From assembly GCA_048013815.1 (NCBI GenBank), contig CM106586.1, positions 21,452,001 through 21,516,000 on the forward strand: a stretch of DNA of 64,000 bases, read 5' to 3'. The notes beneath the pieces are model-generated. The model was given only the letters and a program-made list of their open reading frames with translations. It was not told the origin of the DNA and ran no database searches. Position 1 is the stretch's first letter; every line of letters begins with the position of its first letter. This stretch comes from Setoptus koraiensis. Taxonomy: Eukaryota > Animalia > Arthropoda. Of this stretch, positions 1 to 20,655 are shown piece by piece. The position numbers and the translations under genes were made by a program.

Positions 1-3000
1 TGTTTTTTGCCCCATGAAGAGGGATGCTCCGTCTGCAGTTTGTTCAACAAACTTTGTTGGGGCCGGCAACCGGCAAGTTGATGATTGTGTTACCAAGTGG
101 CGGCCGCAATTCTCTTCGTGGGGCCCATTGTTGTCAATGGTGGCGCTGTTGTTGTTGTCGTGCCACGACGGGTAACCGGGTGCTCGGGCCGGCCTCGCAT
201 GTCGCTTTGTCGCGGCGACAACTCGCTAGGTGGGCCCCGCCGATCAAATCGATCGCTGTCGTGGCAACACAACTGGCGAGCCGCCAGCGAACATGATTAA
301 ATCAAGCTGATGGGCCCCTGTCTCAACTCTTCGGTTTCCAGCAAAACAGCGCGAGCAGCGGCGCACACAGCGAGCTAAGTGCTCAATGATTAGAAGCATC
401 TCTCTCGTCTGCCAGGCGCCTCTTTCAGGCCGCGACGCTGGCTGGGGCCTGCGACGCGCCGGGAAATGTCATCGCCGCCACGACATTCCTACTGGGCCTC
501 AGTGGGAAGCTGGCGCGGCGCGGCGCGTTAATTCACTCGCCGATTGTTGTTGCCGTTTCTCCACTTGGAGGCTCGCCGGCGGAGACACGCGGGCTGACAC
601 ACTCAATCTAGCCGATCTAACCGACATAGTTGTGCATGCTCCTTGGGCCCCCTGTTTTTTCTCTGGCCCCGCCGATTTGTCGCAAAACGTATGTTCGCTG
701 TTGGGCTGTTTAATTGGTATTGTTGGCTCGCAAACGAACGATTGAGCTCGCCAACTGACAACAACCGATTCGGCCAGCGGGCCCCTCCTATAATGTCAAT
801 CATGGGCCCAAATCGATATATTCTGGTTGCAGCCGCTGGCTGTTTCTGGCGCACCAGAATCCGTGTGCCCCCGCCAGGGCAACACACTCACGGACGAATG
901 CACCGAATGCACTTGCCATGGCGCCCAACGGATATGAATTTATTGGCTAGTAGTGGGCCTCGTTGTGATACTTTTTCGCATTGGCCCGTGTCAATTGGAA
1001 TTGCTTCGTTTTCTGGCGGCGATTTCGGGCGCCAATTGGGGCCCATCTCTAATGTGTGTCGGGCAATTATCGCCGCCGCTCGGCTGCTTGTCGCCGGCGT
1101 TTCGGGCCGGCTAAGCGGCGGGGCGCCAACAGTTGAGAGCCGCCTCGTGGCAGCACCTGTGAATGAATGATGATAACAGCGCGCGCTTCGGTGCCACCGA
1201 AGGGGCGACGCGGCTCACAAGGTGACGCGCACTCTGTTGTTTATGTGTTGTTGTTGTTGTTGTCATCGTTATTGGCCCTCACAATGATCGATTCAATTAT
1301 CCATGTTGTCCGACAAGCGATGACATAATACTGGCAAGTCATTCGTCGTCAGCGCAAACAATGCTTGCCAGTGGTGCACTTGGTGAATCGCTGGCTTCCA
1401 ATCCGTCGTATTATCCCAACATCATCCCCACCTTGCTCGCGCCTCCACTGTTTTCTATGCACGTGACACGTGCTATACCGGCATAATACGGTATAAATAT
1501 TTAATTACGCCCCAATATCCGAAATTAATGCATGTTATACTAGGTGCGCTCGGCAATATATTCATTGCCACTGTGTGGTGCCTGTCGCCAACGGGCCCCC
1601 AAATCTCGTCGGCTGATCATGGGCCCGACTACAATCGTAGATGCACTAATTAATACGTACAGACGTGGCAATTTGTGGCCTGGAAATTTCGCATTATTAT
1701 TCGCACCTCACGCGCCTTGCCTGATGCTCGATCACGTCGTATCACTAACGACGATGCCGATGAAAATTGTTTCGCATGTCAGCGGGCACCTCTAACGAAT
1801 TGCATTCACTGTGGGCACATTGGGCCATAAATATCACGTCACGACGAGCTCGATCGAATCCGTCCGAATTTGCCGAGAGCAAAATATACGAACACTTGGC
1901 AACATTCATTCGCTAATCGGCTTCACCCAAGCGGAGATTCGTGATCCTTTATGCAAGGCACAAACCAAGTGGAATAAGTCACAGAAAAGAGCATGCATAA
2001 ATTCAATAATTTTTCAATATTCTTGGTGCAAGCACACACTCCGGGGATGCTGGTTTACATCACGAAAAATGAAAAAAGTCACAGCAAACAACGAGAGTTC
2101 CTCCAAACGAAAACTTGAAGCTCGACTGCCCCTCAATGAGAATTTATAGAGGCCCTTGATTCGCTGACAATGTCACTGTCTGGCCGCCACCGGATTTAAA
2201 TAAAGTGTTGGCCTCACTAACACAAGCTGGCACCGGCAGCTTGTGACTTACAAGTTGTGAGTCGATATGAATGAGACTGAATCTCAGAATTTAGATGAGC
2301 ACATCTACTGAAAGAACCCGCTAATGACAAGGCGCTGTCTTGAGCGGATTTTTTCACTAGCTCAGTCAATTAATTTGCCCAATTTCTAGATACGGGCCCC
2401 AAATATTCGTGCGTGGATAGTGATCGAGCGTGTCACAGCGGCGACGGTTGACAAAATTATGCCAAAATGTGCAATATGGCATATCATTGGAGTGATATCA
2501 ATTGACAATTATCTAGCTGGCATCGCTGAGATTTCGCAGATCGTGCCCCCGGCGACAGTCGACACATCGAGCATAAAATGCAGCGGCGGCGCACGAAGAT
2601 GCCTCGCATAAACAGATCTGTTGATACACGTTATTACGACTACCTCAATTCGTGAAAAGGTACATTTTCGGACGGATAAAATAAGATAAATAAGATAACA
2701 AGACCATTGACGAAATGTGTGCCGGCATGTATGAGATGCCGGCGACTGAAGTGGCCCGTTTCGTGGCTCTTATCTTATCCCGTCCAGAAACATAGGTGTC
2801 ACCTATTAGGTGACTACTCATGACAAGTGGTCGGATTGGGCCCATTTGGGCGATAATGCATTTCGGCATCTCGAAAAAAACATTTCGGGCACATTGGGCG
2901 TGAGAGCGAGCCTTTTCAGTTTGCATGCGATCATTTTATCTGTCACCGATTGGTATCACGATGAATTATCGCGCGCATGAATTGAGCGCGACAGAAGCGA

Positions 3001-3602
3001 ATTTGAGCACATACGATTTGTCACTTATTTCGTGTGGGGCCCCAATGGAGACAGCGCCCAGTGCGTTAATTGGCGCCAACATGCCACATGTCAGACAGTT
3101 GATGAAGAGCGCCTAATGGCGCCCAGTCGGACAGGTAGACAGGTGAGTGCTTAGAGGCGCGCACAGCTCGACAGAGTGTCGCCCACAAATAACTGTCAGT
3201 TGTGTCGCCAAGACATCTCAAGATAACGTGTCGTGACAGCAGCTAGTGCTGGCTGGCTATCGAGTGTCACAACAATTGTTGGCCCTTCCTATGGAGGCTC
3301 CAACCGTTGCAGTCCAACGGCAAAACTGAGACACGAGTCCACTGACAAACTGAACAAATTCAAGAGCGTCAACTTGTTGGTGAGCTCATTGTTATATCAA
3401 ATTGTTATTGCATTATGACGGGCGAGTTTGTTTGGCATTTGTCGCGCAAATAAACAGATAAATGTCAGGCGGGCCCGCTGTCGAGCTAATTATAATTGGC
3501 TGCCGCGAGAGGCTAGCGCGACGAAAATGCCCGCTCTGTTTGCAGCCGACTGGCGTTGCTTTCCGAAACTAACCCCCAGCCGGATTATGCGGCCAGATTA
3601 TA

Positions 3603-3668
3603 ATATCGCGATGATATCGCGATGATATCGCGATGATATCGTGATAATGTCGTGATAATGTCGTGATC
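3603..3668. repeat. 11-bp minisatellite (ATATCGCGATG)n, ~6 copies, degenerating 3'
   Basis: Read directly from the sequence; the unit contains the palindrome ATCGCGAT. Confidence 0.9.
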
Positions 3669-4316
3669 ACATGCGCGCCTTTCGGCCATTTGCGTTCATG
3701 CGACGTGATTCATTTGACACGAGCTAATGATGCCCGCGTTGTACGTATTTTTGCACGTGTATGCAGGGCAGTATTATTAACAAGTGTCGACAGCAGATCC
3801 GACAACAACAAGTTTGCGACAATATGGACGAAAGTCGCCACGCATTACTAATGTGACATTAGTCGCAAACAGCCTAGGTGCACACAACAATACAGCCCAT
3901 TAACAGACATATTACATAATAATGGTAATAATTAATCTTAGCTAATGTCGCCCAATGTCAGACACGTTGTTTCGCTGGCCACTTGTGAGCTGGCTTTTTG
4001 AGCTGAAGTGGCGCCCTCAGGAGATTGCGCCAACCGGGCTGAGATCGCCCGGTTGCCCGGTGTCAGCAAGCTTTTTTGGTTTCAGGTTTTCGGTCGCCCA
4101 CCAAAAACCAGCCAAAACGGAACCAGCGGCGTCGGTTCCGTTTTGCTTGTCATTAGTTGTCATTGTGTGTTCGCGTAGACTGGTGCTGGCACACTGGCTG
4201 GCCATTAGAAAGCCAGCGCTAAAAATAAATGTAGCAGCAAGCATAGACGACGTTTGGGCTTATTATTCTTTCCACCCGAGCGAGGAATCCCCTGTTTTCT
4301 GTCCGTTTTTTGGTTG

Positions 4317-4395
4317 TTTTTGGCTGTTTTTGGCCGTTTTCTGGCCGTTTTCTGGCCGTTTTCTGGCCGTTTTCTGGCCGTTTTCTGGCCGTTTT
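4317..4395. repeat. 11-bp minisatellite (CTGGCCGTTTT)n, ~6 copies
   Basis: Read directly from the sequence. Confidence 0.92.
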
Positions 4396-5104
4396 GTCGT
4401 GTAATTCGGTAGTCGTGTGTTCGCTCGTCCGTTGTGACCGTTTGCCGGTGGCTCGCATCACTTAATTGTGCACTCAATTATCTGACCCGCACTCGTACTT
4501 TTTCGCCCGTCTCGCGATTGTCTCACGCGCTGAAATTGTCAGGCGATTTCAGCGCGCGAAAGACCCATTGTCATGTCTTGGCAGCGAGCGATTCAACGAG
4601 CGACGGGCTGCCACTGAGCCCGTCGAGGCCACCCAGCGCCAACAATCGGGAGCCGACAATCGGGCGCCGACAATCGGGCAACAACAATCGAGCATTAGCA
4701 GCGACAATCCGAACACAAAAGGTTCGCGGGTATGTCAGCGGACATATGCCAGACGAGCCAATTGCTGCGCAACAAACAGTGCAGTGCAATTAGAATTTCT
4801 CGCAATTTCTTTTCGGGGCCACCAAGTTGGCCCAAAAAGAAACTTGTTTTCTTAGCGAATTTCCTACAATTTCTCTCGTTGGCAAAACACTGTGCTGTGC
4901 TGGGAATTTTAGCGCGACCCTGCGCTGACAAACTGGCATTGTGAACGCCTCTACCAGCCACCAAATACAGCCAATTCCGGCACGAGGCATGCAGATTTGA
5001 CCAGTCAGTTTCAATGGGCCGGCTCAACGCATGACACGGCCGCCAACGGGCAGCGCCCGCAAACGAAATCGCGAGAAATCGCCCAGTGAGCGGACTTGAG
5101 GATC

Positions 5105-5190
5105 TCGGAATATCAGAATATCAGAATCTCAGTCTCAGAGTCTCAGAATCTCAAGAATCTTAGAATCTTTAGAATGTCCAGAATCTAGAG
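5105..5190. repeat. Degenerate (AGAATCT[C/T])n repeat
   Basis: Read directly from the sequence. Confidence 0.75.
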
Positions 5191-7154
5191 TTCGGGGTTG
5201 TGAGGCTCGGCGTGCGCCAGCGGTCAGCCTATTGGGCCCGTGTGCCGTGATCCGCCCATGCCGCTCGCAAGTGGGCCCCACAAAAGATCCATTGAGATAC
5301 AGCTCGCGCTGGTGTCCGGCTGGCGGGAAAAAGAGGCGACTTTTTGTTGTTGTTGCGCTGGCGCTGGCTCGGCCGGCGACCACGTTCGCGCCCCCATTAT
5401 TCATAAGCATCTGCATCACTTAGTGACACGCTTGCCAGTGGTGACATTGACGCCGAAATCACGTCGGCCGCTCGGTCAGTAAGTGCTTCGGTCGGCGCGC
5501 CGATCACGCGGCCGCTGTCCCGAGTCATGGGTCTCGGGCTCCGGGACGCCGCCGCATGTCTTACAATAACAGACTGACAAGACGCTTCTTTATGGCCCCA
5601 TTCTCCCCTTGGCCGGCTGGCTCGCTGGCTGGCCGGCTTGCTGGCAGCGAACAAGAAAGAACGCGCGCCTCATCCGAGATGCGGCTGGTGGCGCCAGATA
5701 ATAAGCGGGCCTCTCGCGAGAACGTGACTCATGAGTTATGTATATCACTCGTGACGGTCAGTGTCTGGTATCGCCAAGTGTCTCATTGGGCACTTGCTCG
5801 GACATCATGATCGTTGCATTATATTCAATTACAAGCTGCACATGTCATTAGACTCGCAACGCTCTTATGTAAGCTCTTATATACACTCTCATATTATATG
5901 CAGCTTGTATATGACTCATACTATCTGAGTCGTCTACAAGCTGCCTCGCTCGAGTATCTGGCCGGGCCCCACTCAGCCAAAAACAAGGGGCTCCCTCGCG
6001 CCACTCGTCTGCGAGAGCTCGCAACCGAATAATCTTGAAATAATAATATTACACATACATTGAAATGACACGTATATTGAGTTAATATATATATGTGTGT
6101 GTGTATATATCCGGATATCGGAATATGCTATTGTGAGCTGCTATTTTTGGCCCTGTTGCAAGGTGAGCAACGTGCCAGCGTGAGGCTGCACAAATGAGCC
6201 AATTCGTCGGTGCGCCAAATTTGCAGGTTCGCCCCCACTGGCCGTCGAAGAAAACGGACAGAAGGAAAATTGTCGATTTGAGCGCCTTCGAGCGGGCGCT
6301 CACTTACGAGTTGGCTCACTCGCGTCGCAACAAAGCGCCAACGTGTCTGCTCGACGAGCCTCAATTCCTCAACTTTGAGTGTTCGAAGGAGCCTCGAATC
6401 GTGCGTTCGCAAGAGCCGAGCGCCAGAGTGCAGTCTCGACGGGAGCCCATCGAACGGACAATTGAATTGTCTGTCGTGTGAGTCGAGCCAATTGTGATGC
6501 TGGTGGCAACGTTAGATTGGTTGCTGTGGATTGGATAACAACATTACAGCATCGGCCGTCAGGGTGAGGCCAAATAAATGATACACGCGCTCATTAGGTC
6601 CAACGGAGTCGGTTCAGAAATTCTTTCGTTCGCGACACAACTCTGGAGCTTCCTTTTCGGGCTCGAACCTGCCCAGATGACACCTGTTTTTTGCACTGAA
6701 AACACTCAAGTTGCATTTTTTTTTGTCCCTAAAACCGAAAATTGGGCTTCGCTTTCATCGATCGTTGCAAATTTCGCACCAACTGACGAACGCCATGAAT
6801 TTCTGATGAATTCGTGGTCCGAAAATCCTGGAAATGATCTGAATATGCACTGTGTTTCGTTCAGTGGGTTGCGAGAAATGGAAAAATCTCAAGTTTTGAA
6901 ATAAATAAAACTGAAAACCGACTGTGAGCAGTTTTTCTCACCGATTCTGTTTTGCCTGATAACGATGACAGCACACAGGATTTGGGCCCAACACATGGCA
7001 TATGTAGTGCCCAGGATTGTTGCGATGTGTCTGTAATTGAATTATAGTTGCAGTTATTATATTTATGGCCTGTTTACGACTCTGCCCACCATCCAAAGCA
7101 GGATATATCCGTCCGAAATAATATGTATGTTAGCTCCGAATGGCACCGGCTTCC

Positions 7155-7293
7155 ATCGTGATACTTGCATCATGATATTCAACGTATCATGATGTTCGAA
7201 GTATCACAATATTCGAAGTATCATGATATTCGACGTATCATGATATTCGACGTATCATGATACTCGATGTATCATGATACTCGATGTATCATC
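7155..7293. repeat. 17-bp minisatellite (TATCATGATATTCGACG)n, ~8 copies
   Basis: Read directly from the sequence; the unit carries the palindrome TATCATGATA. Confidence 0.92.
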
Positions 7294-9272
7294 GCGGTCG
7301 CAAAGCAGTGAATCAAACGGCAATTGAAATAAAACACGAGCCGCTATCGTGACAATCCGGAATGACAGAGTTCGCACTGGGTGTACACGTTTCTGCCCCC
7401 CCACCCTAACCGGGTATCCGGACCGGCCTTATAACAGGTTATGTTATACACAGTTATGTCGGGTCCGGTCGCGGGCAAGTTAATGGCGGATTGTCATGCC
7501 GACCGGTATGCGTGGTTATTCGCGCTTCAGTGCACTAATGCACTGGATTGATGTGTTTTTTGGCGAGCCCAATCTGACGCATGAGGTGAGAGAGGCCAAA
7601 TTAAGATCGTCGGTCATTAGTTGTTCGTAGTGCGATATCTGACGCACTTTGGCTGCCATCTCTGGCACGATATCTTCTAAGCGGCGCCCCCACCGAAAAA
7701 CACCTTCCCATGAGCGTGTCAGGCCCTACGAAGAGGCCCCTGCGAGACCCCAGCTCAATGAAACCAACTCATGCATACAGTCACTGTATTACAGTGTGTG
7801 TGTGTGTGGGTGTTGTCTCACCACTCACGCATGCACGCCCGTGCTAGTTTGGCACCCGATTCAATTGGCGCCAATTCAATTTCGTTACAAATAATTTATT
7901 TGAAATAAACTGAATGTTGAAACGAGCTTGAATGAATTATCTTGAGCGAACGGAAGTCGCGAATCTGTCTTCATTTAGTGATTCTGGACGGGCGCCAATT
8001 TGCAGATTGTGAATGCGCACAAAAATATTGATACAACGATTGGTGGATACAACAACAGTCGTCTTGCCATAGCCAAGCGAATTGAATCATCCCAACTGCA
8101 ACATACACAAATGGAGCGATCAAAATATCTGGTCATCATCTCGCGAATATTTGCATGAATTATTTGCATGACACACCAGCCGTAATTAATTGATTGTCCG
8201 ACAACCAGTGACACTGCCGAGCCGCCCTATTAGGTCATGCGGAGTGTGTGCATACTTCGCTTGCATTTCTCCCTCAATTGGGACTATCATCAATGGGGAC
8301 TCTCATCGATTGGGACAAACAATTGAGCGCGTGATTAATTTGCAACTCGGCGGAATTGGGCCATTTGGAGGCGACGGCAGCGACAAAGCTTCTGTGAACG
8401 TTCTTCGAGAACGTATCGGTGGAACAACGTGAGCCTGGACAGCGATTTTCGCTCAAAATGATCGCACAACACACAAACTCTTTATTTATACGCTCGCCTC
8501 GATCAGCTTTATCCGCTGATGGAAGTTGTCAAATCGAGCAGCCAGTTATACAGTGCAGTGGTTTGTGGTGGCAATACAATCACGATGATCGATTGAGTTG
8601 AGTCTCTATTGAACGTGTTGCGCGGCGCGATTCGCGCGTGTTGGCACCGGAAGTGGGCCCTTTGTGTTTTTTGCATTTACATTTTCTTCGCATGGGCACA
8701 TTTTCTGTTAGGTTCTGCTAGGTTCTGTTAGGAGGCGAGCAAGCGAATGACAAGTGTGAACAATATCATTATTATGACGTAATTGTCGTCGCACGCGCTC
8801 TGTAGCACTAGCTCTGCAGTGTGTGGCTGCATCTTACCTGGATATTGGATTGTGGGCGTCATTGCATATCGCACTGGCATATCGCACTGGCTCATTGTGA
8901 CATTGTGTGGGTGTCTCATTGTCGGCTTGTCGGCTTGTCGGCGGGCTATAGGCATTATTGGCTATATTATGCAAATTATCACCACTGTGTAGCATAATAT
9001 ACCCAAAAAATAGACCACGTTGAGCATGTTTGCGTGCAACCAGGTAACTAACGGTTCACGGGCTGACTGGTGGCGTGACTTTGTGAAAACTGGCGCCGAG
9101 TTCAACTGATTTGGTGCTGCTGCTGCTAGGCTTATCATTGATGAGTTATCAACTTGCGAAATAACATCCATTTGGCACATTGTTGCTGATTAAATAGTGC
9201 CCGCGGTGCTCACGTCCGCGCGTCACCTTTGTCATTGCGCCATTGCGACAATTTCGCGTTGACTGACGCGCC

Positions 9273-9375
9273 ATTTTTCGCTCACTTTTCGCGATTTTTC
9301 GCTCACTTTTCGCGATTATCACGCCGACTTTTCGCGATTGTCACGCCGACTTTTCGCGATTGTCACGCCGATTTT
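9273..9375. repeat. Compound tandem repeat with CACTTTTCGCGATT / CACGCCGACTTTTCGCGATTGT units
   Basis: Read directly from the sequence. Confidence 0.8.
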
Positions 9376-11419
9376 CGGCTACGACGAAAAAAAGAGTTGC
9401 AAGCGATTCGTCACGTTGGGCCTAATCCATTTTTGTGATCCAGTCGAGCGCAATAGTCGATAACAGCGATGATGTCATCGATTTGCGAGCTCGCCACCTA
9501 CGCGCCATCGGCGCGTCACATTTGGCCGGGATTATCTCTGATCCCTGCCGGGCGCATTTCAAGGCCGACTCGGCTTACGGCGAGCCTGTCTAACTGTCAG
9601 CGAGACAATCAAATGTTTGTTTTTCAGCTCCGCTCACCTGTCGCCGATCAGTGTCATTCGGCGCCTATTGCTACCGGCGGATATTGTGCCCGACTGACAC
9701 GCGGCCGGGCGCTGGCGATCGTTGCGCCGCAATCAGCGTCGAGCGTCGGGCACCGCCGCAACACGCCAACAAGGCGCGTATAACCGCATGCGGCCGTACA
9801 CATAATCGCCGCATATAATCACTCGTGTACAAAAGTCGAGCCCGTGGCCCTGGCGAAAGGCGCCGCAACTAAATTTTCACACCGGAACGAACGCCGCCCG
9901 AACAGCTCGCCCGAGCGACGACGCCAACAATCGCTCGCCAGCCGCCACAGCTCGCTAGTCAATATGCGTATAGTGGGCGTTCGAGAATAATCTAGCAATT
10001 ATAGTCGACGAGATCATATTATCACGCCTCATTACGTTTCTCTCATGATGCACTCATCGTGTGCAAAGGTGAGCCGTAGGTGATTGCACCCAACCAGGTG
10101 ACCAGGTGAACGCGGCATAATCCGGCCGGATTGCCTCGTTTGTGCGTGTGTGCAATGAATTTAATGTCGGGCGCGCCAAGTGATCTGGAACTCGCCTCGA
10201 TAGTTGTCGAGTGGGCCCAACGAGACGCGAGCCCGTCTTGTCGGGCCGAAACTGCCAATGATGGCTCGGCTAGTGGGCCCACTGGAGCTATTGCTATTGT
10301 TTAGTAAATCGCCCAAGTGTCGGCGGGCGCTCGAATTTCGAAAGAATTTCAAAACAAAACAAAAAATGCTTCTTTTCTGTCGCCACTTTCGAAACCATTT
10401 CCGAACAAAAACAAATTGGATCCAACGTAGATTTTTGTGCCGATGTCAACGATCAGTGCGCGACTGCTGCCCGGATTCCGGCGCCCAGTGCGCACTATTT
10501 CGGCAATTTCGGTAAAACTGTCTTGTGCGTCAACTTTGGCGCTTTTTTTCCGAACGCTTCTTGCAATATTGTTTGCAGGAAGCGGGCGCCTGCTTCCGTG
10601 CGAGCGCAGCGTGGCAGGCGCACGCTTTCATGCAAAAATTCACATAAGCAAAAATGGAAGCGAAACATGAAAAAGACGAGGAAAATGGCCACTCCGTGAG
10701 CTCAATCGTGGGCCTGACAGATATTGTAAATATATTGTAGTTCGTAGCAAAAGCACAAAGTAACATAAAGTGGCGAGATGTTTTTTTTTTGAGATGGCGC
10801 TGGAAGCGATAAATCGCAAACAATTCTCGACCATTAATTGGGGAAGAAATGCACCTTCTTCACTAAATATTTGGACAATATTTGGTCTTTGATGCACACA
10901 ATGTTGTTCTGATGAATTATTCATGCGCCAGCCAGCCGTTTGATTGGCCTGATAATTCAGTGGTAAGTCACAATGGCGCTCACATTGCGACTGTGTGTGG
11001 GGCCAGCGGAGATATTTATCGCCGATCTGTCGAAATGTCACTGCAGCGGTCAGGCCGTTATTGGTGAGCTCGTCATTGATTTAGTGTGGCCAGTTGAGCG
11101 TGTTTATGGGCCCACGACTGGCACCATATCCAGCCAATACTGACCCTTTGGCTGTAGGGGCCTGGCAATCATTGAACATTGCTTGAAATTGGTAGTTACA
11201 TTTTAGTATGTTCTTGTTTTGGGCTTGGCGCAATTTTGCCGAGCGCCACTGATTGTGTTTGTGATCTGTTGTGATTTAAAAAGACGCCATTGGTTTGCGC
11301 GAACAGCACGACCGTTATCGCGAGGCCAATCATTCTGTTCAGGGCCCACAAATTCGATTCTGTTCCGATATGAATGGATCTGGTTGACAGTGTGCATTTA
11401 TTTGTATTTACAGACCGCG

Positions 11420-11475
11420 TAAGTCTAGTCAAGTAAGTCTAGTCAAGTACGTCTAGTCAAGTACGTCTAGTCAAG
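11420..11475. repeat. 14-bp tandem repeat (GTCTAGTCAAGTA[A/C])x4
   Basis: Read directly from the sequence. Confidence 0.92.
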
Positions 11476-11944
11476 GTTCATTAGGGGCCCCATTACGGCC
11501 TTGCAATTATTTGCAGTCATAAACAAGCATGCAGAGGGCATGAACAAATATGTGCGGTTAAATGCGCCAATTTCTGGCAGTGTGTTCTGGCAGTGCAAGC
11601 CAAATTAGACAGCGAAACAATCAGCAATCTCTGGCGCTCTGACTTGACCCTGACCGGTTATTATAGTGCGACAACTCGAACGCGACCGCCTGTCTCTCGA
11701 GCCATACATTAACTGACAACATTGACTGACTGGTGACTAAATAGGTCGGATATTTTCCGTTCTCGGAGCGACTGTTTCGAGGGGAAGCTTCGAGTAGTCT
11801 CAGGCCGCTTGTGCCTTTTGTGCCGCTCACTGCCAGATGAATCGTGAGCCTCTCATCCGGCCGATCCGCTGCAAAATATCCGATTTACAAATCTTTTCGT
11901 CGAGCATCAGCTTGCCTTTTTCGTTTGCCCGTCTCTCACTATTA

Positions 11945-12005
11945 TCTCTCACTATGAGAGTCTCACTATGGGAGTCTCATTATGAGAGTCTCACCATGAG
12001 AGTCG
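11945..12005. repeat. 15-bp tandem repeat (TCTCACTATGAGAG-like)x4
   Basis: Read directly from the sequence. Confidence 0.8.
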
Positions 12006-14934
12006 CACAGCTCTTATGAGGATTCACATTGAGAATTAGTTTGGCGCCGCACCCGTTCAAATGGCGGGCTATCCCTGAGCGCGTTGCCCAGCCGGAAAGG
12101 CGCCTTTTCACTATGCGCCACAAAGTGTCCCCATTCAGTCGTGCTGCGGGCCCCCAAACAGCCATTGTTGTTTGGCCAGACGAGGGCTAATTTATTTATA
12201 TAATCAAGTCGGTTGCGAGACCAGAACCGTTGATCCAAGCGCCCAATCAGCTGGCCGAAATTGTTGGTGGGGCCGGCCTGTAATTAATATGGTTCACGGC
12301 GTGGCGGTGTTGGCGGCCAACACACGCCATGTGTCTAAACTTTTCGCCAGTGATCGGCTTAAGTTGTAAGCCTGGCAAGCTTATTGGCAAGCTTGTGTTT
12401 GGCTGGCCGTTGCAGGCCAACGATCAGCGTGGCCCGTGATCGACGCCAGCGTCTCGTCTCGTCTCGCCTCATCTCATCTCATTTCGTTGTGTGCGAAATC
12501 AAAGCAATGAAAATGGACGACGAAAGCAAAACTCTACACAAATAGCGCCAGAGTGTGTGTTGCCAGAGTCACGTTGGCTCGGCCAGATAAAACATTTTAT
12601 CTATTGTCTATAATCAAGATTAATAGCGGCAATCAACGTGGCGGCACTGTAAACTCAATTTGTAAGATCAACAATTCCGACGGTCGCTCGCCCGCTTGTC
12701 GCACGCACTTAATCCGCAGAATTGAAATGCAACGTCGTTGCCGTTGTTGCCGTTGTTGCCGCTGTTGCCGCTGTTGTTGCTGTTGTTGTTGCTAACTCAA
12801 CGGCAGCGGCGGGGGCCCCGTAACGCGCGTATGTCGTCGCTAGTCGGGGCCCAGTTTTCCCTTGTTTGTGCTGCCGGTCACATAAGCTGGCGTCTTTGTG
12901 CTGATGGGCTCGTTACATTGGCACACTGTTAGCTCAAGAAGCAATGGTCAGTTTAATTATTTACTGCTGGTCTCAGTGATCTATTTTGATGACCAGTGAA
13001 CCAGTTATTACAGGGCGTTTGCCAAAACCATGGAATACAATTTGTGCGCACATTACATTTATCCGAGCAGCGAGGGCCCGTTGCCTATGCTTACTAGCCG
13101 CGCACTGACCCAATGTAAAACGTAGCGCATTGGGTCAGCTAAGAAAAAGTCACTTTTATCTCATACACTCTTGCCAACCGAAATCCTATTTAGCCATTTA
13201 GTCACCTACAACGCCGCCCGAATGAAATTGTCTCCAACTGCACTCAAGCAACACAACAGCTTGCTTGACCGGCACAAATTAACGGAAAATTTCTGCCAGT
13301 TCACTAGCGGCCAGTGACTAGCCAGCCGCTAATGGCTTTCAACATTTAATTATTACAATTCTGCGTCAGTGTATGGCTTGGTGACGCTGCCACAGCACAA
13401 CCTCGATTATCTCTCATCTAGTTTGATTGGCCCCCTTCGGCAACAATCATCTGCGAAATCTATTTATCGCTTCAGCGCGAGTTTTGCAATTATTAGGTCA
13501 TCTTGTTTGTCGCATGCTGTTCGAATGCTGCCAACTGCCAATGGTCCGGTGCTGGACATTCGGTGGGCTCCCAATATGAACTTTAGAGTCTCTAAATTAG
13601 AGAGCATTGGCAGTGCAAGTTGAATAGTCTGAACGCGACGAGACAGCAGCCGAACATTTGTCCGTACAATCGATTCAATTATGGCATCAGTTATTGAATT
13701 ACACCTGTCGCCAGTTACTGAGAATCAGTCTGAAATGGATGGTAGAAATGATGAAATTTTAAAAAAAAAATCCAAAAATGACCCAGTACGATCTGAATAT
13801 CTTACACCGACTCTCAAACAATTAACATCGTTTTCAGCAATCCTGTTCGATCAGAATGTTGTCGTCCTTCAGGAAAAAAAAATGACCATCATCGAACAAA
13901 ACGATTGAATAAAAGTATTACAGTCCAGAATCTAGACAAACATGGGTCCGTCACTTTTTTTTTGTTAGTCAGACGGGTCAATACGGCAATTGCCGCAACA
14001 TGCAACAAGAAAATCAATAATAATTGGCGTCTACAGTTCCGTAATCCGGGTCCGCACCGTCGTACTGTGGTCCTAAATCAGAGTGATCGTAAATGTCGAC
14101 TAGTTCCTGTGCCATAACGAACGACCCACAAACTACCACGACTAGGCACATGAGGATTTTGATGAATTGAATCATATTGACCGATTCCTTCACTGCTGCC
14201 GATTCAATTTTGTACTAATCAGAGTAATTCTGATTCAAGTTTTAGTCGTCGACAAGACGCGAACTAAATTGAATTGATGATACAACTAGCATCTAGTTTA
14301 TATACCCATATAATCGCGACAGCTCATAGCAAATCGTTCGGTCTATGAATCAAGATGAAGCTGATTGTTAAGATAATAAATATAATGTTCAACAGGTGCC
14401 ATAAATCGCCTAGATTCTACACAAGTCTCTCCGACTTATTGATTTGATCCAACTCACGTAACAAATTTCACACTTTGATCTACAACCCAGAAGAGAGATT
14501 AAGTAATTAGCTGGTTATGAGGCGTATAATGAGGCCAGCTGTTTGGAATTGAAATTTTTCCACGCGACATTTCTTTCCGCGGTAATTTGATAACAATGGT
14601 TGTTCACATGTCAAAATCCAGAATATCCTTGTGTTTAATAAACAGTTTATTATAGTAATAAACAATGAGTAGTGACTCTTTTTTCACGTGAATGCCTACA
14701 AGTTGTTTATTATTCTCACTCAGTCTCGTTCAAGCAATCGAAACTAAGCTCTTCTTTTCCGTGTCCGATATCACGTTTCAATTAGATGTTGACGAGGAAC
14801 ATCTAATCATAAATTTTTGAATTTCGTGTCTCGCAACAACCGAAAAATAATCTGATTCTAAACAAACTCAACTGGCCAAAACCGGAAAGACAGGGGAATC
14901 CGGAAAATCATCGTTTGAATCTCATAGGAACCGA

Positions 14935-14957
14935 CTCTCTCTCTCTCTCTCTCTCTC
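14935..14957. repeat. (CT)n microsatellite
   Basis: Read directly from the sequence; followed immediately by ATAG, a possible acceptor at 14961. Confidence 0.9.
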
Positions 14958-15087
14958 ATAGACGGTCTCTCAAAACTACATATAACTCTACCAGACTCTT
15001 GAAATACGGACCTCTTGAGTGGCATATCTCATTCTCATTACTATTTGTTTCTTTCTCCTTATCTATGTTTTGTCAACATTGGATTAG

Positions 15088-17095
15088 ATCAAAACCATGA
15101 GACAAACAATTGGAATGTCAAAGTTGTCAATAACCACATGAATCGCCAGAGGCGACTTTCTCCCCCGGTTACACCAAGACACATAACTAACCGAATGGTC
15201 AATTTTATTTATAGATTTGATATAAGCCAAGCACAATTTAAGCCCAATGAACAATTGTTGGAGGCCGAGTTGCACCTGTATAAGTTATTGCCAGATACTG
15301 TCAGCAGCAGGACACGGAGTAATTTGTCTAGCAACAATAAGAACGACATTACAAGCATCCAGAGTGATTCATTTATTCATACCAATGATACAGTGGAGGC
15401 AAGAAACAAAACAACAGCCACACGCCAGGACCAATTTAATGCCTTTGAGAGACAATCAAGATTGGCCTCACAGCCCAACTGTCGCCTGAAGACAAATCTT
15501 CTCGAAGTAAGTACTTGCCACTTTTACTTATCCGGGTTTCTTATACCCTTGGCCACGGCTGCTATTTAATTGAATATGATCATAACCATGATCTGTACTC
15601 GTATTTGCATAATGAATTCATTTATGTATTTATAAACGCTGCTACACCGGCGATTCTATTTATTCAACGTCAACAAGGTGAGCCTATACGAAATTATGTC
15701 CGACGATTACGACAGTCTATTTAACTCGACCAATGATGGCGACAGTGACAGATTGCGCTTGTTGGACATAAGAAGGATCGATCTAGATTCAATTGGCTGG
15801 GAGGTATTCTACGTTAAGTCGGCAATCAATAGATGGATGATTGATGGCTCCAAAAACAAGGGTAATTCAGTCACCCGATGATTACAATTCCTACTTGATT
15901 ATTTTTAGCTTACGCTGTAATCACTAAAACACTTTTTCATTCTGTCGATCCACAACACTGTTTAGGTTTATTGTTGAAAGCAAAATCTATGCTTAATGAA
16001 ATATTGGAGATTGGCTGCTTGAAGTTCTCTGGTGCATTTGCTAGAAATGACCAAAGCGACGACGGTTATGAATATTCAAACAATAGGAAACCCCACAACC
16101 GTTTTCAACCAATTCTGGTTGTCTACACCAATGACGGGATCGGAAAATCCGAGCAATCACAACCGATCAAGGGAGCACTAGGTAACTTCAATGATGATTT
16201 TCAGCGCTCGAGTGTTCAACTAATGAACAAACAAAATTAATTATCAATCGTTAATAACGATATCATTGTCAAACATTTTAACTCGTGCCCGTTCCCTTTC
16301 AGACAGCAATATTTTCGGTTATCGTTCCATTGATCAACCCGAGGTACCAACAACTAGCAAGCGATCCTCATCGTGGCTGACGGGGGCCATCGTCAGCAAT
16401 CCAAAACTATTCAATCCAGATACAAACAATGGTACAGCTACTGTGATAATCAACGAATATGATGGAAAACTAAACATTGATAAGAAAAACAATAGAGATC
16501 GACAAATATTAGTGCAGAAATCAGAGCATCTCAATTGTTGGCACATGCCCATTTGGTTAAATTTCCGAGATTACATGCCTCCAAACAGAATTATTATGCC
16601 TCAAAGTAAGTTACTCGATCAGTCGATCCACAACATTTCACAGAAGCTCAACTAACCATTTTAATTTTCTCCTATTGACACACACAAACAGAGATAGATA
16701 TCAATCAGAGCCTTATGATCAGAGGAAGACATGAATCTAGGAATATATTAGACTTTTTGTCTAGCAATGATTCTAGCAATCTCAATCAAAAACTTTTAGA
16801 AGAATTAGTACGGATGGAAAAACTCACATTTAAATTGTGCAAACAAATTGCCTGTCATGACAATGAGCGAATCATTGCGATAAGCGATCAATTGTGTCAT
16901 CATAGAAAATTGTTAGTTGATAAATCTAATATCATTGAAACTACTGATAATTCCAAATGCCTAGTCGTATGTAAGAATGGCTACTCCTCGAAATTATCCG
17001 CTGTTAACATATTGTATCATAGTCAATTAGACAATCATGTAGTATTACGACAACAAAATGATATGGTCTCGACCGGATGCCGTCCATTACAGTAG
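15088..17095 (+). CDS. TGF-beta/BMP-family ligand precursor, ADMP-like, with degenerate mature domain; 5' exon(s) with signal peptide not resolved. Exons: 15088-15506, 15678-15861, 15966-16181, 16303-16605, 16692-17095
   Basis: Four GT-AG introns (15507-15677, 15862-15965, 16182-16302, 16606-16691; two donors are GTAAGT) join five ORF pieces with consistent phase (0,1,1,1). The spliced product has TGF-beta prodomain motifs: YRFDIS..EQLLEAELHLYKL, VSLY, LLDIRRI..GWEVFYVKSAINRW..NKGLLL, QPILVVYTNDG. Ligand motifs are CWHMPIWLNFRD..IIMP and KLSAVNILY..NHVVLRQQNDMVSTGC. From memory, AELHLxKL / GWEVF / QPxLVxxTxDG / xNxLY / VVLxQxxDMV fit ADMP better than BMP2/4 or Gbb. Confidence 0.88.
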
Positions 17096-17394
17096 TGACA
17101 TTATAAGTTAGACACGGAGAAAGAATACATTAGCTGGAAGAAAAAAAAATAACATGGCCACTCCGACAGCTAGAGAGAATATTGACGAAATCTAAAATCA
17201 ACCTTTTTAGGACAAAAAATCGTCAGTGTTGTGACCTTGAAAATCAATCATAATAGTCAAGTTACAAGAAAACTCGTCTAGGAGGTAGAGGTCAAAATGT
17301 GTTTGTTTTAATCGCAGAAATTGTTAAATAGCACATGTGAAAAATAAGCCGATTATTAAAGTAATAGCAACACACTTTTACTTTTCTATTTAGA

Positions 17395-20300
17395 TCAATC
17401 ATCTAAGTACTCAAATGGCTCGGGTGGTTCGGGTTCTTTTTCTTCTCCAACTTTGGATCCATGAGCTATTACTGGTTCAATTAACTCCTCAGCTTCACTG
17501 GGTCTTGTATCCTTCATCAACATTATCCCTCCAATCGTAATGTCTTTAATTGGCTGATGGCGAGATCCCTCGGGCATCTGTATAACCTTCAACTGTTGCC
17601 TGAGCACTCTAGCTGGATTTGTTAAAATCTCAAAATTTGGCTCTTCCTTGGGCCTCTTGGCATCCTTGCTAGATTCCTTACTATCCTTTGCATCGTTAAC
17701 ATTAGCCTCGTCGGTGGCGCTGACTTGTTTCTTGCTTTTTCCATCCTTGGTGGACTCTTTATCTTTGGGTGAATCCTTACTACTTGATGATTTTGTTTCC
17801 GGTTTGCTAGAGGAAAGCCTACCGCTACTCGACACTTTAGAGTCATCAGCAGGTGCAGTCTTGTTGAATGGTTCCTCATCTATATCCATCTTCTCGATTT
17901 CATGTTGTCTGTCTTTTTTGTTGGCCTCCTTCTTTTTAGCCTTAGCAGTTATAGATAAAATCGCTGTGCTAACCTTCTCTCGTTCACGTTCTTTCTTCTC
18001 CTCTATCGGTGGTGGATAGGCAAATGTGGAGGGTTTCGCCCCAGAGCGGTATTCCATTTTTGGTATTTTCAAATCGGCATTTAATCCTACAATAAATGTT
18101 GGCGTGAACGCTAGTGATAGGAAATGTGTGAGCGGGTACCAATACCAGAATTGTGTGAATATCAGCATACCAACCACTGCACAAACGTTGGTATGGCCTG
18201 TTCTAGATTGTAATGAAACTGTCACATTACGTCCGCCAGCGTCTATAATTCCTTGAGCTAAAATTGCACCAAATTTCGCCATAACATCGTCATGCTTATC
18301 AGCGATAACTTTAGCATATAGTTGACGAAACTCTTTGACTTTGGGATTCAACACTTCTGTCTGCTGAATGAGAACTAATGCTGAGGCCACAAGAGCGCCT
18401 TGGCGGACAAAATTCACAGAATCATTTATCATTGGCTCGAGTAATGATATTGCTTCTTTGCTACCGGAACCAGCACAGCAAATACCAATTGCCATAGCGG
18501 CACCACATCTCACGTGTGGATTGTAGCTTTCCGATAGAAGGGATACGACATTGGGACATTGTTCGGGACTTCTGAAAAGAATAAATCCAATGCCTACGAC
18601 TGCGGCACGTCGAACATCGTCATTCACATCACTTACTGCGACATGCAAGAGTTTAGAGATGGCCTTATTATTACCCGAACCACAATATGCCATTGCGATG
18701 GCATGCATCGCTGCCCGACGTAGAAGAGCGTCCTTATTCGAATCTAGGGTTGCTATCATTTCATCTGCTTGTTCCATACAACCAAACATCATCAAACCAA
18801 TACCGATTGATAGGCCTCGAAGTATTTTTTCATGTTGAGTTTCCTGAGCATAGCTAACCATGTCGATGATAGCAGAGCGTGAATTAGAACCGAGCATCAC
18901 TAGACCCATTGCGATACCAGCTGCTTCTCCAGTTATGGCATCATCTTGGTAAAGATTGAACTTAATTTGATCATATATGTCATTTCGATTAGTACCCATA
19001 GCCGCTAGACCAACTCCCAGACAAGCTCCGTGCCTGATAGCTTCGTTTGTGGCGTCTTTCAGTTGATTCAATAAATACTCTATTATGGAAAGACCATGAT
19101 TCGCGTATATCAGACCCAGAGCGTACAAGGCACCTCCTTCAGTGTAACCTGTTGTCTGGCCATTTGCAGCTCCTGGGTTCTTGGGTAAGTATGGAGCCAA
19201 GAGATGTAGTCCATCATTTTCATGTCCATGGTGGATAACACCTAGGCTGGCTGTGGCGGTAAACTTGGCCCAATTAACTGCTCTGCCCAACCACTCGAGA
19301 TTGTCCCGCAGGAATGCGTCTGATGTAGTACCGTAATGCATGAGACCATTAGCTATAACTGTTGCTGAATGGCAAATAGAATTTCTTACTGAATCTTTAG
19401 TGTGTTTGAGTATTAACAAATCGGCATGGTTTTTGCGTATCATGAATTGGAGCTGCAGTTCGATTGTAGTTTCACCGTGCAAAATAGTCGCTAGCTTCAT
19501 CAGTCTCTCTTGACGGGCTTTTTCGGTATCACTCAGACTCTCAAAGAGGTCCCCAGTTGTAGCCTTGGTAGATTCGGCGACCTCCGCAGACGGGGCTTCT
19601 TTGGAGCGGGATGTTTTTCGCTTCTTGCCACCAGCCTCTGTTGCCGCTTTAGCTCCTTCGGCTCCATCAATTTCCATCCTGGTTTCATTTTCTGCATCAC
19701 TCCCAGCTTCGCTGCAACTGGTGGCTTCTGACTCGCCTCCCTCAGGTCCATGTTCAGAATTCTCAGATATGGGTGTGTCGCCGATAGATTGGTTAGCTCC
19801 AACTAGCGTGGGTAATGGAGCAAAAAGTCTGATTGCTTGAATGACTCTTATGAGGAATTGTTGTGTACCGGACTCGTATAAATCGAATGCTATTTGATAG
19901 GCCATAAGATAGTCATCGGGATCATCAGTTTTGGTAAGCTTGTTCAACATGGCGCCAACTGATTGAGCATCATCGAGAAATATTAAGCATTGAATCATAT
20001 TAATATAATCTGGTTTTTCGAGATTTCTATACAAGCGTACTAGTATACGTAGTATGTCATCACGAAATTTTCGATTTTCCATAAGTGACATGCAGACATT
20101 AAATGCGTATGATAGCATTGCTGAAACATCTGTAGATTCTGTGATTGCCTTCTCAAATATATCCATTCTACGTGTTTCTAGAGCAAGTCCAAGAACTTGC
20201 TTGTATTGATGATGTTGGAAGCATCTCTCGAACATACGATTGACAATGCCCTCAAGGCGCGGATCAATGTCAATGTGTTTAACTTCTTCGCCTGGTTTTA

Positions 20301-20655
20301 GTGACAAATTATAAAGACGATGTTTGGCGTATTGATCGATACATTTGCTAATAATAGTGTCAACATATTCCGATTGTTGATTAATATCGAACAGCTGATT
20401 GGCACTAATGGCAAATGCGAGACAATCATCAAAACTGCCTAAATGATAATAGATTTTACTTGCCAATAGAGCGGCTAAATTTCTATTCCTAAATCCTTTG
20501 TCTTCGCATAATGATTCTATCTTGACTATAGCATCAGAGATTTCTGGCCAGAATTCGTCGACAATGCCATTGAGCTGATGTAGAGCGTATTCCTTAAGAT
20601 CCTGGCCACTCTCGTCCAATAGGGATATGATACCTGAGGCGGAGGTGATTTTCAT
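17395..20655 (-). CDS. PSMD1: 26S proteasome non-ATPase regulatory subunit 1 (Rpn2), single exon, ~1086 aa
   Basis: Colinear with human PSMD1 from start to end: [42 protein letters not shown] repeats ([32 protein letters not shown]), [23 protein letters not shown]-terminal [13 protein letters not shown]. The ATG at 20655 matches the orthologue start; the ORF-track TTG extension to 20757 is low-complexity. Confidence 0.98.

Follow-up and report, generated by a model that had tools for sequence, protein, structure and literature searches.

A BMP-derived mite gene with a dismantled cystine knot and signs of purifying selection

Can a ligand gene of the TGF-beta family lose its disulfide knot and still be kept as a working gene? 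This question is raised by a stretch of 64,000 nucleotides from the eriophyoid mite Setoptus koraiensis (GenBank assembly GCA_048013815.1, contig CM106586.1, positions 21,452,001 to 21,516,000; hereafter the window), in which an original prediction had placed, at 16303-17095, an ADMP-like BMP gene with a dismantled and re-wired ligand domain. The cystine knot of the TGF-beta family is formed by the pairs C1-C5, C2-C6 and C3-C7, with C4 in addition for the dimer. To our knowledge, this knot and the tryptophans of finger 1 are treated as the invariant core of every ligand in the family. We examined the locus, its relatives and the substitutions between two species, and we are confident that it holds a real, constrained gene of BMP descent.

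The spliced gene and its altered ligand domain

The gene occupies 15088-17095 on the forward strand and consists of five exons (A to E) separated by GT-AG introns of 171, 104, 121 and 86 nt. Joined in phases 0, 1, 1 and 1, the exons give one open frame of 507 codons that ends with TAG at 17093-17095. Exon A (15088-15506) opens at a phase-1 acceptor (ttag before AT), its frame being open from 15015, and closes at the donor GTAAGT. It encodes a poorly conserved N-terminal part with the motif RQRR, the beta1/alpha2 block of the prodomain (NFIYRFDISQAQF to NEQLLEAELHLYKLLPD), a variable insert and the stretch CRLKTNLLE. Exon B (15678-15861) carries the core of the prodomain arm, including RLRLLDIRRIDLDSIGWEVFYVKSAINRWMIDGSKNK, and exon C (15966-16181) continues the prodomain with LLLKAKSMLNE..GCLKFS, a variable insert and QPILVVYTNDGIGKS.QSQPIKGAL. 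The first part of exon D (16303-16535) is a linker between prodomain and ligand. The interval of the original prediction thus corresponds to exons D and E, whose phase-1 junction over the 86-nt intron gives a product that runs through LNCWHMPIWLNFRDYMPPNRIIMPQ into KIDINQSLMIR and ends with KCLVVCKNGYSSKLSAVNILYHSQLDNHVVLRQQNDMVSTGCRPLQ before the stop codon.

The ligand region begins with CWHMPIWLNFRDYMPPNRIIMPQ, the exon D part of finger 1 (16536-16605), which is continued in exon E by (K)IDINQSLMIR (16692-16723), a wrist of 77 residues (16724-16954) and finger 2 with the C-terminus, KCLVVCKNGYSSKLSAVNILYHSQLDNHVVLRQQNDMVSTGCRPLQ (16955-17095 with the stop). Only two canonical cysteines, C1 and C6 (17078), are in register, and the same state is found in an orthologue from a second species (contig L001, described below). 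C2 is replaced by a serine (16709-16711) within the sequon NQS, C3 is absent with the loss of CxGxC, C7 is a proline, and in place of the CC pair there is a CxxxC displaced by three residues. Both tryptophans of the WxxW motif in finger 1 are replaced, by proline and arginine in the window and by proline and lysine in L001; the exon E part of finger 1 is identical in L001 except for an isoleucine replaced by methionine. About 87 residues lie between the C2 position and the VVC cysteine at the C5 position, compared to 36 in BMP2, and the wrist, which ends with IIETTDNS, is some 50 residues longer. The finger alignments and each of these losses had been read from the DNA in the original prediction, and all were seen again in our analysis.

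The prediction had also remarked that the total of cysteines in the ligand region is still seven. This count is correct for the window, but only six are conserved in the orthologue. The wrist cysteines KLC (16838) and QLC (16895) are conserved while IAC (16853) is species-specific, so that the seven is a coincidence and the conserved number is even. With two further cysteines in the prodomain, eight are conserved between the two species, as are several N-x-S/T sequons. The ligand knot has probably been re-wired.

A regular-expression search found no RXXR motif between prodomain and ligand in the product of either species, and the linker contains neither a conserved RXXR nor a conserved dibasic site, the KR at TSKRSS being specific to the window. 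The RXXR motifs of the window are confined to exon A. The only proprotein-convertase motif of this type common to both species is RQRR (15144-15155, forward strand; RRQR in L001, alignment columns 26-32), which is followed by LS in each species and lies about 13 residues ahead of the prodomain strand beta1. Thus, the ligand domain lacks the knot spacing, the WxxW motif and the junction furin site, three features that define the TGF-beta/BMP family. The missing junction site had escaped the original prediction, as had the incomplete 5' end of the model, which is taken up below.

We assign the gene to the BMP family on the strength of several matches. The Pfam TGFb_propeptide model (PF00688) matched exon B with 27.2 bits against a cut-off of 25.8, and its counterpart in L001 with 23.4 bits. 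Searched as a profile against the PDB, exon B found pro-BMP9/GDF2 chains at the top (E = 0.4 for the best). When all PDB chains were searched with a profile of exon E built from the two species, the five best matches were BMP2 chains, and BMP2 accounts for 8 of the 12 matches listed, two BMP2 chimeras included (E = 0.036-0.9). This alignment spans the end of the wrist helix to C6. It pairs IIETxDNS with AIVQTLVNS at the end of the BMP2 wrist helix, and KLSAVNILY...VVLRQQNDMVSxGC with ELSAISMLY...VVLKNYQDMVVEGC of BMP2. The resemblance of finger 2 to BMP2 appears to exceed chance. As for finger 1, the 30-residue BMP2 segment used in the original prediction is a true BMP2 sequence, as checked against the PDB. 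Slid without gaps over the 507-residue product, it scored best exactly at CWHMP in the window and at CFHMP in the orthologue, with scores reached by 62 and 213 of 5000 shuffles, respectively (p about 0.01-0.04). This match would be weak alone, yet it is placed where finger 1 is expected.

Other searches were negative. Exon D alone had no BMP match in a profile search of the PDB, and neither had the profiles of exons A and C. The Pfam TGF_beta model (PF00019) did not match the exon D or exon E piece of either species, the exon pieces being searched separately and not as the spliced product. Exon E as a single sequence found nothing in the PDB and only noise in Pfam. Look-alikes of exon E with a DUF8422 domain in the ESM Atlas were discarded as sub-threshold (score 0.88).

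Like members of the BMP2/4/Dpp/ADMP class, the mite gene has a BMP-type prodomain arm and the finger 1 pattern C...P(I/L)(W/Y)(L/V)(N/D)F.D......I(I/V).P. Like BMP2, it has the end of the wrist helix, a finger 2 of the form KLSA(V/I).(I/M)LY...VVL+...DMV..GC, and a C-terminus that ends 4-5 residues after C6. Unlike that class, it is without C2, C3, C7, the CC pair, both tryptophans and the junction RXXR, and has the expanded wrist. The best ligand match, to BMP2, is weak at its E of 0.036; together with the best prodomain match, to pro-BMP9, it points to the BMP class without singling out ADMP as the original prediction had done. In arthropods ADMP is patchily distributed: Strigamia, Apis and Nasonia have it, Drosophila and Tribolium do not (PMC4244043, PMC4218986).

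The orthologue and selection on the altered product

An exhaustive HMMER search of representative sequences with exon E returned one true relative, P0001 (149 residues, E = 2e-38). It is the last-exon open reading frame (ORF) on L001, a 7.35-kb Logan contig from a second species, where it has the same neighbour, Rpn2, in the same orientation. No further orthologue or paralogue was found in this search or in two word-indexed searches, which gave P0001 only; P0002 and P0003 were discarded as repetitive, unrelated proteins. All five exons are open in L001 (729-1123, 1289-1505, 1609-1836, 1935-2234 and 2362-2834), and the eight splice sites are kept with identical positions and phases and with GT-AG at all four introns. 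The exons differ in length from those of the window by 24, 33, 12, 3 and 69 nt, all multiples of three. By contrast, the introns differ by 6, 1, 23 and 41 nt and, at about 50% identity, are effectively unalignable. The stop codon of the last exon and the ending GCRPL are present in L001 as well, and 36 of 45 residues of finger 2 and the C-terminus are identical.

The derived residues are common to both species: INQS with the serine at C2, LM(I/M)R, MPP(N/T)(R/K), C(x)3C-NGYS, and GCRPL with the proline at C7. This indicates that the knot was dismantled before the species split. The prediction of an intact, spliced TGF-beta/BMP-family gene with a dismantled knot is therefore borne out by the GT-AG exons, the propeptide and the same state in the orthologue.

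We then compared nonsynonymous and synonymous substitution rates (dN/dS) by the Nei-Gojobori method for this one species pair. Over the whole gene, dN/dS is 0.22, from proportions of synonymous (pS) and nonsynonymous (pN) differences of 0.59 and 0.22 (Fisher p = 3e-34). The ratio is 0.13 in finger 1 and 0.14 in finger 2 (Fisher p = 2e-8 for both together), about 0.05 in exon B, and 0.03-0.09 in the prodomain core, namely 0.09 in the NFIY..LLPD block and 0.03 in the QPILVV..YRS block, which spans the exon C/D junction. The fast-evolving linker and the N-terminal part each have 0.56. Judged by these ratios, the fingers and the prodomain core are strongly constrained, whereas the linker and the inserts drift.

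The convergent neighbour Rpn2/PSMD1 (17395-20655, reverse strand), a single exon of 1086 codons with the Pfam domains RPN2_N, PC_rep and RPN2_C, served as synteny anchor and rate control. It lies tail to tail with the BMP-like gene, 299 nt from its stop codon. For the same species pair it has a dS of 0.53, a dN/dS of 0.04 and 96% protein identity, and the two species appear to be well separated. The ratios indicate purifying selection on the altered product since their split. ADMP 'caught mid-loss', one of the readings offered in the original prediction, is contradicted by a derived state that is common to both species and constrained. A modulator acting through its prodomain only, another of these readings, is disfavoured, the fingers being nearly as constrained as the prodomain core. 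A decoy or a dominant-negative partner would be a plausible candidate role.

Candidate function and competing explanations

The question is then what such a product might do. For our best explanation as a whole, namely a selected BMP-derived gene whose product would be a secreted modulator of the BMP pathway that does not engage type I receptors, the chances seem about even. The modulator mechanism taken by itself we put forward more tentatively, at somewhat less than even chances. The product would still pass through the secretory pathway, with its fold held by three new or shifted disulfides among the six conserved cysteines of the ligand region. Possible pairs are C1 with the shifted C5 and C6 with the new KC cysteine, plus a bond between the two wrist cysteines, although this pairing is a guess. 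The product would stay joined to most of its prodomain, any cleavage being confined to the conserved RQRR near the N-terminus.

In BMP2, the finger-1 tryptophans and the pre-helix loop form the 'wrist' pocket for the type I receptor, and finger 2 bears much of the type II 'knuckle' surface. In the mite protein, the pre-helix loop has presumably been replaced by a long helical insert, and with the tryptophan pocket and this loop destroyed, type I receptors would not be engaged. Finger 2 is the most BMP2-like part of the product and among the most constrained, and it would keep leucine at both positions of the BMP2 knuckle leucines. The protein may thus occupy type II receptors, ligands or extracellular BMP binders and in this way modulate or antagonize BMP signalling, with no activation of Mad of its own. 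In a bolder version, a secreted single chain of prodomain arm and fingers, left uncut at the ligand junction and with three re-wired disulfides and a new helical wrist instead of the cystine knot, would be a new kind of extracellular BMP-pathway modulator that has abandoned the ligand role in the miniaturised, gene-poor eriophyoid mites; we regard this as rather doubtful.

Several family members offer comparisons. Lefty, BMP3 and inhibin-alpha, as well as GDF9 and BMP15, either attach to components of the pathway but give no productive type I/type II complex, or have no interchain cysteine and form no covalent dimers. The mite protein resembles them in that its six conserved ligand cysteines leave none obviously free for an interchain bond. 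However, all of these proteins keep the six knot cysteines and a furin site, and the mite gene has neither. Xnr3 (Nodal-related 3) of Xenopus lacks only one conserved cysteine. Mutated in its ligand domain, it has lost the signalling mode of its relatives, and in function it would be the best parallel to the mite gene, in which a crippled knot is coupled to a constrained prodomain. Xnr3 is described as a Nodal-family member, altered by mutation, that acts as an inhibitor of BMP signals and needs its pro-region to do so (PMC11848351, refs 15-16). The two differ in extent, the mite gene being altered at four canonical positions and both tryptophans; their origins are independent, and the function of Xnr3 has been tested while that of the mite protein is predicted. 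Drosophila Gbb is cut at an N-terminal 'NS' site of its prodomain, which yields a large ligand, Gbb38, with most of the prodomain attached (bioRxiv 10.1101/131276). The only conserved RXXR of the mite gene is at a place comparable to that in Gbb38 (and Scw), just before beta1. Gbb, on the other hand, also has a conventional S1 site and an intact knot, and cleavage of the mite product is a prediction.

Several points weigh against the secreted-modulator explanation. No shared signal-peptide exon came to light when the sequences upstream of the gene in the two species were scanned for ATG with a phase-1 donor, compared by tblastx and aligned as DNA, and secretion is assumed. The comparison covers two species only. 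With a dS of about 1.2, the BMP-like gene is close to saturation, and badly aligned inserts account for part of this value, so that its dN/dS is rough, though pN is far below pS. The argument from receptor epitopes is drawn from BMP2 mutagenesis as given in textbooks and from a sequence alignment (E = 0.036) rather than from a structure. AlphaFold2 run on exon E with a two-sequence alignment gave a predicted local distance difference test score (pLDDT) of 37.6, which is unusable. The public runs that cover the locus give contigs colinear with the genome, which contain the introns and have no joints inside the gene; their totals and their uneven depth point to DNA, probably amplified. Two of the three runs (X1, X2 and X3) are filed under another study and organism label.

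The missing signal-peptide exon speaks for the main alternative, namely that the product was re-purposed outside BMP signalling, with arm and fingers as a scaffold; it might even act within cells, a setting in which a knot of disulfides would serve no purpose. We consider this unlikely, though several observations favour it. A methionine directly before beta1 is conserved, M(V/A)NFIY; the loss of the knot went together with that of the tryptophan pocket and of the junction furin site; and searches by sequence and by ESM Atlas features gave relatives in one species only. However, in both species an open frame of 45-60 codons extends from the conserved phase-1 acceptor, at which exon A begins, to the methionine ahead of beta1. 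From base composition, the chance of such open frames is about 0.05 x 0.02. Since the frame is open to this acceptor and the stretch contains no methionine in L001, at least one more coding exon must exist upstream. Furthermore, the six ligand and two prodomain cysteines and the conserved sequons fit a secreted protein, and finger 2 remains BMP2-like.

That the gene model is wrong is very improbable; in that case, the actual transcript would either be joined to a canonical knot exon or have a hidden in-frame intron spliced out of its wrist. In favour of such an error are the unusual length of the wrist, the incomplete 5' end of the model and public runs that look like DNA. Nevertheless, a six-frame scan of the whole window for CC.P...C.C, CxGxC and GWxxW found none outside the gene locus, and thus no canonical knot exon, and the opposite-strand Rpn2 begins 299 nt past the stop. 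The last exon, its stop codon and GCRPL are kept in L001. The hidden intron, which the original prediction had raised as a concern, is argued against by the wrist itself, which evolves as coding sequence (pS 0.53, pN 0.24; Fisher p = 2e-4; dN/dS 0.32) and differs from L001 by in-frame indels only, of 3 and 21 codons, whereas the real introns are unalignable.

It is hardly credible that the gene is a decaying pseudogene, or ADMP on its way to loss, with a frame that is open by chance. Four of the seven canonical cysteines and both tryptophans are lost, the gene diverges faster than Rpn2 (66-80% against 90% nucleotide identity between the species), and it is absent from protein databases apart from one exon-sized ORF. 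These signs are outweighed by the low dN/dS, also in the damaged fingers themselves, by the kept splice sites and in-frame exon differences, and by the same derived residues in both species; a dS of 0.5 or more excludes L001 as a very recent copy. The original prediction had argued against a dead pseudogene from the open frame alone, and the present evidence is stronger. Lastly, sequencing or assembly errors at the cysteine codons are a negligible explanation: the window does differ from all three runs at 13188, 13192 and 13653, but the runs match it over 14966-17600 except at 16440 (A>T, Thr>Ser in the linker), with no change in a cysteine codon, and an independent species has the same substitutions.

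The surroundings of the gene and its meaning for mite BMP signalling

Upstream of exon A, the only stretch that can be aligned between the two species is a conserved non-coding block at 12947-13045 (forward strand), which matches L001 87-186 with 68% identity (E = 9e-5). It contains an initiator-like TCAGTT (GTCAGTTTAATTATTTA) and two ATGs, and lies about 2.0 kb from exon A in the window compared to about 0.54 kb in L001. The block may be the core promoter or the first or 5' exon region of the BMP-like gene. Candidate 5' exons at 13030-13114 in the window and 133-307 in L001 were not adopted; they use different ATGs and frames, and only the L001 candidate has a hydrophobic stretch. The window has about 1.5 kb of extra AT-rich sequence at 13680-15000 relative to L001, including a (CT)n tract at about 14938-14960, which could be an insertion in the lineage of the window or a deletion in the other.

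No convincing protein-coding ORF was found in positions 1-15000 of the window, upstream of the BMP-like gene. An ORF-poor region of this size would be in keeping with extensive regulatory sequence next to a developmental gene. A short ORF on the reverse strand (14014-14193) has, from its second methionine, a signal-peptide-like start and an acidic, tyrosine-rich tail (MIQFIKILMCLVVVVCGSFVMAQELVDIYDHSDLGPQYDGADPDYGTVDANYY) and no Pfam match; it could be a small secreted peptide gene or a chance frame. A (GTTGCC/GTTGTT)n microsatellite lies at 12725-12795. Each of the three runs has contigs stacked on it at depths of 10^4-10^5, with numerous loose ends and back-joints, and the repeat must therefore be common in the genome or in the samples.

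The three runs all differ from the window by an extra T at 13188, an A>G change at 13192 and a 12-nt insertion at 13653, the last in two versions, one in X1 and one in X2 and X3. These are likely to be small assembly errors or polymorphisms in non-coding DNA. In X2 and X3, the two runs with the other label, about 1% of positions upstream of the gene (12799-14684) disagree with the window, compared to only two positions in the 2.8 kb over the gene and its introns (14760-17600). Codon constraint does not explain this drop in diversity, because the introns are included. Rpn2/PSMD1 is one exon, whereas the adjoining BMP-like gene retains at least four introns.

From the pattern of substitutions, the gene appears to encode a working, re-purposed protein and not to be a dying gene. 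Eriophyoid mites have extremely reduced genomes and body plans, and this finding bears on how BMP signalling is organized in them. The gene seems to be missing from protein databases, and standard pathway inventories of such genomes would overlook it. Despite the loss of its maturation site, of both tryptophans and of four canonical cysteines out of seven, this family member has evidently remained under purifying selection across a species split. It offers a natural experiment on two matters: whether a two-finger fold can persist and do useful work once the knot is gone, and how signalling ligands become modulators.

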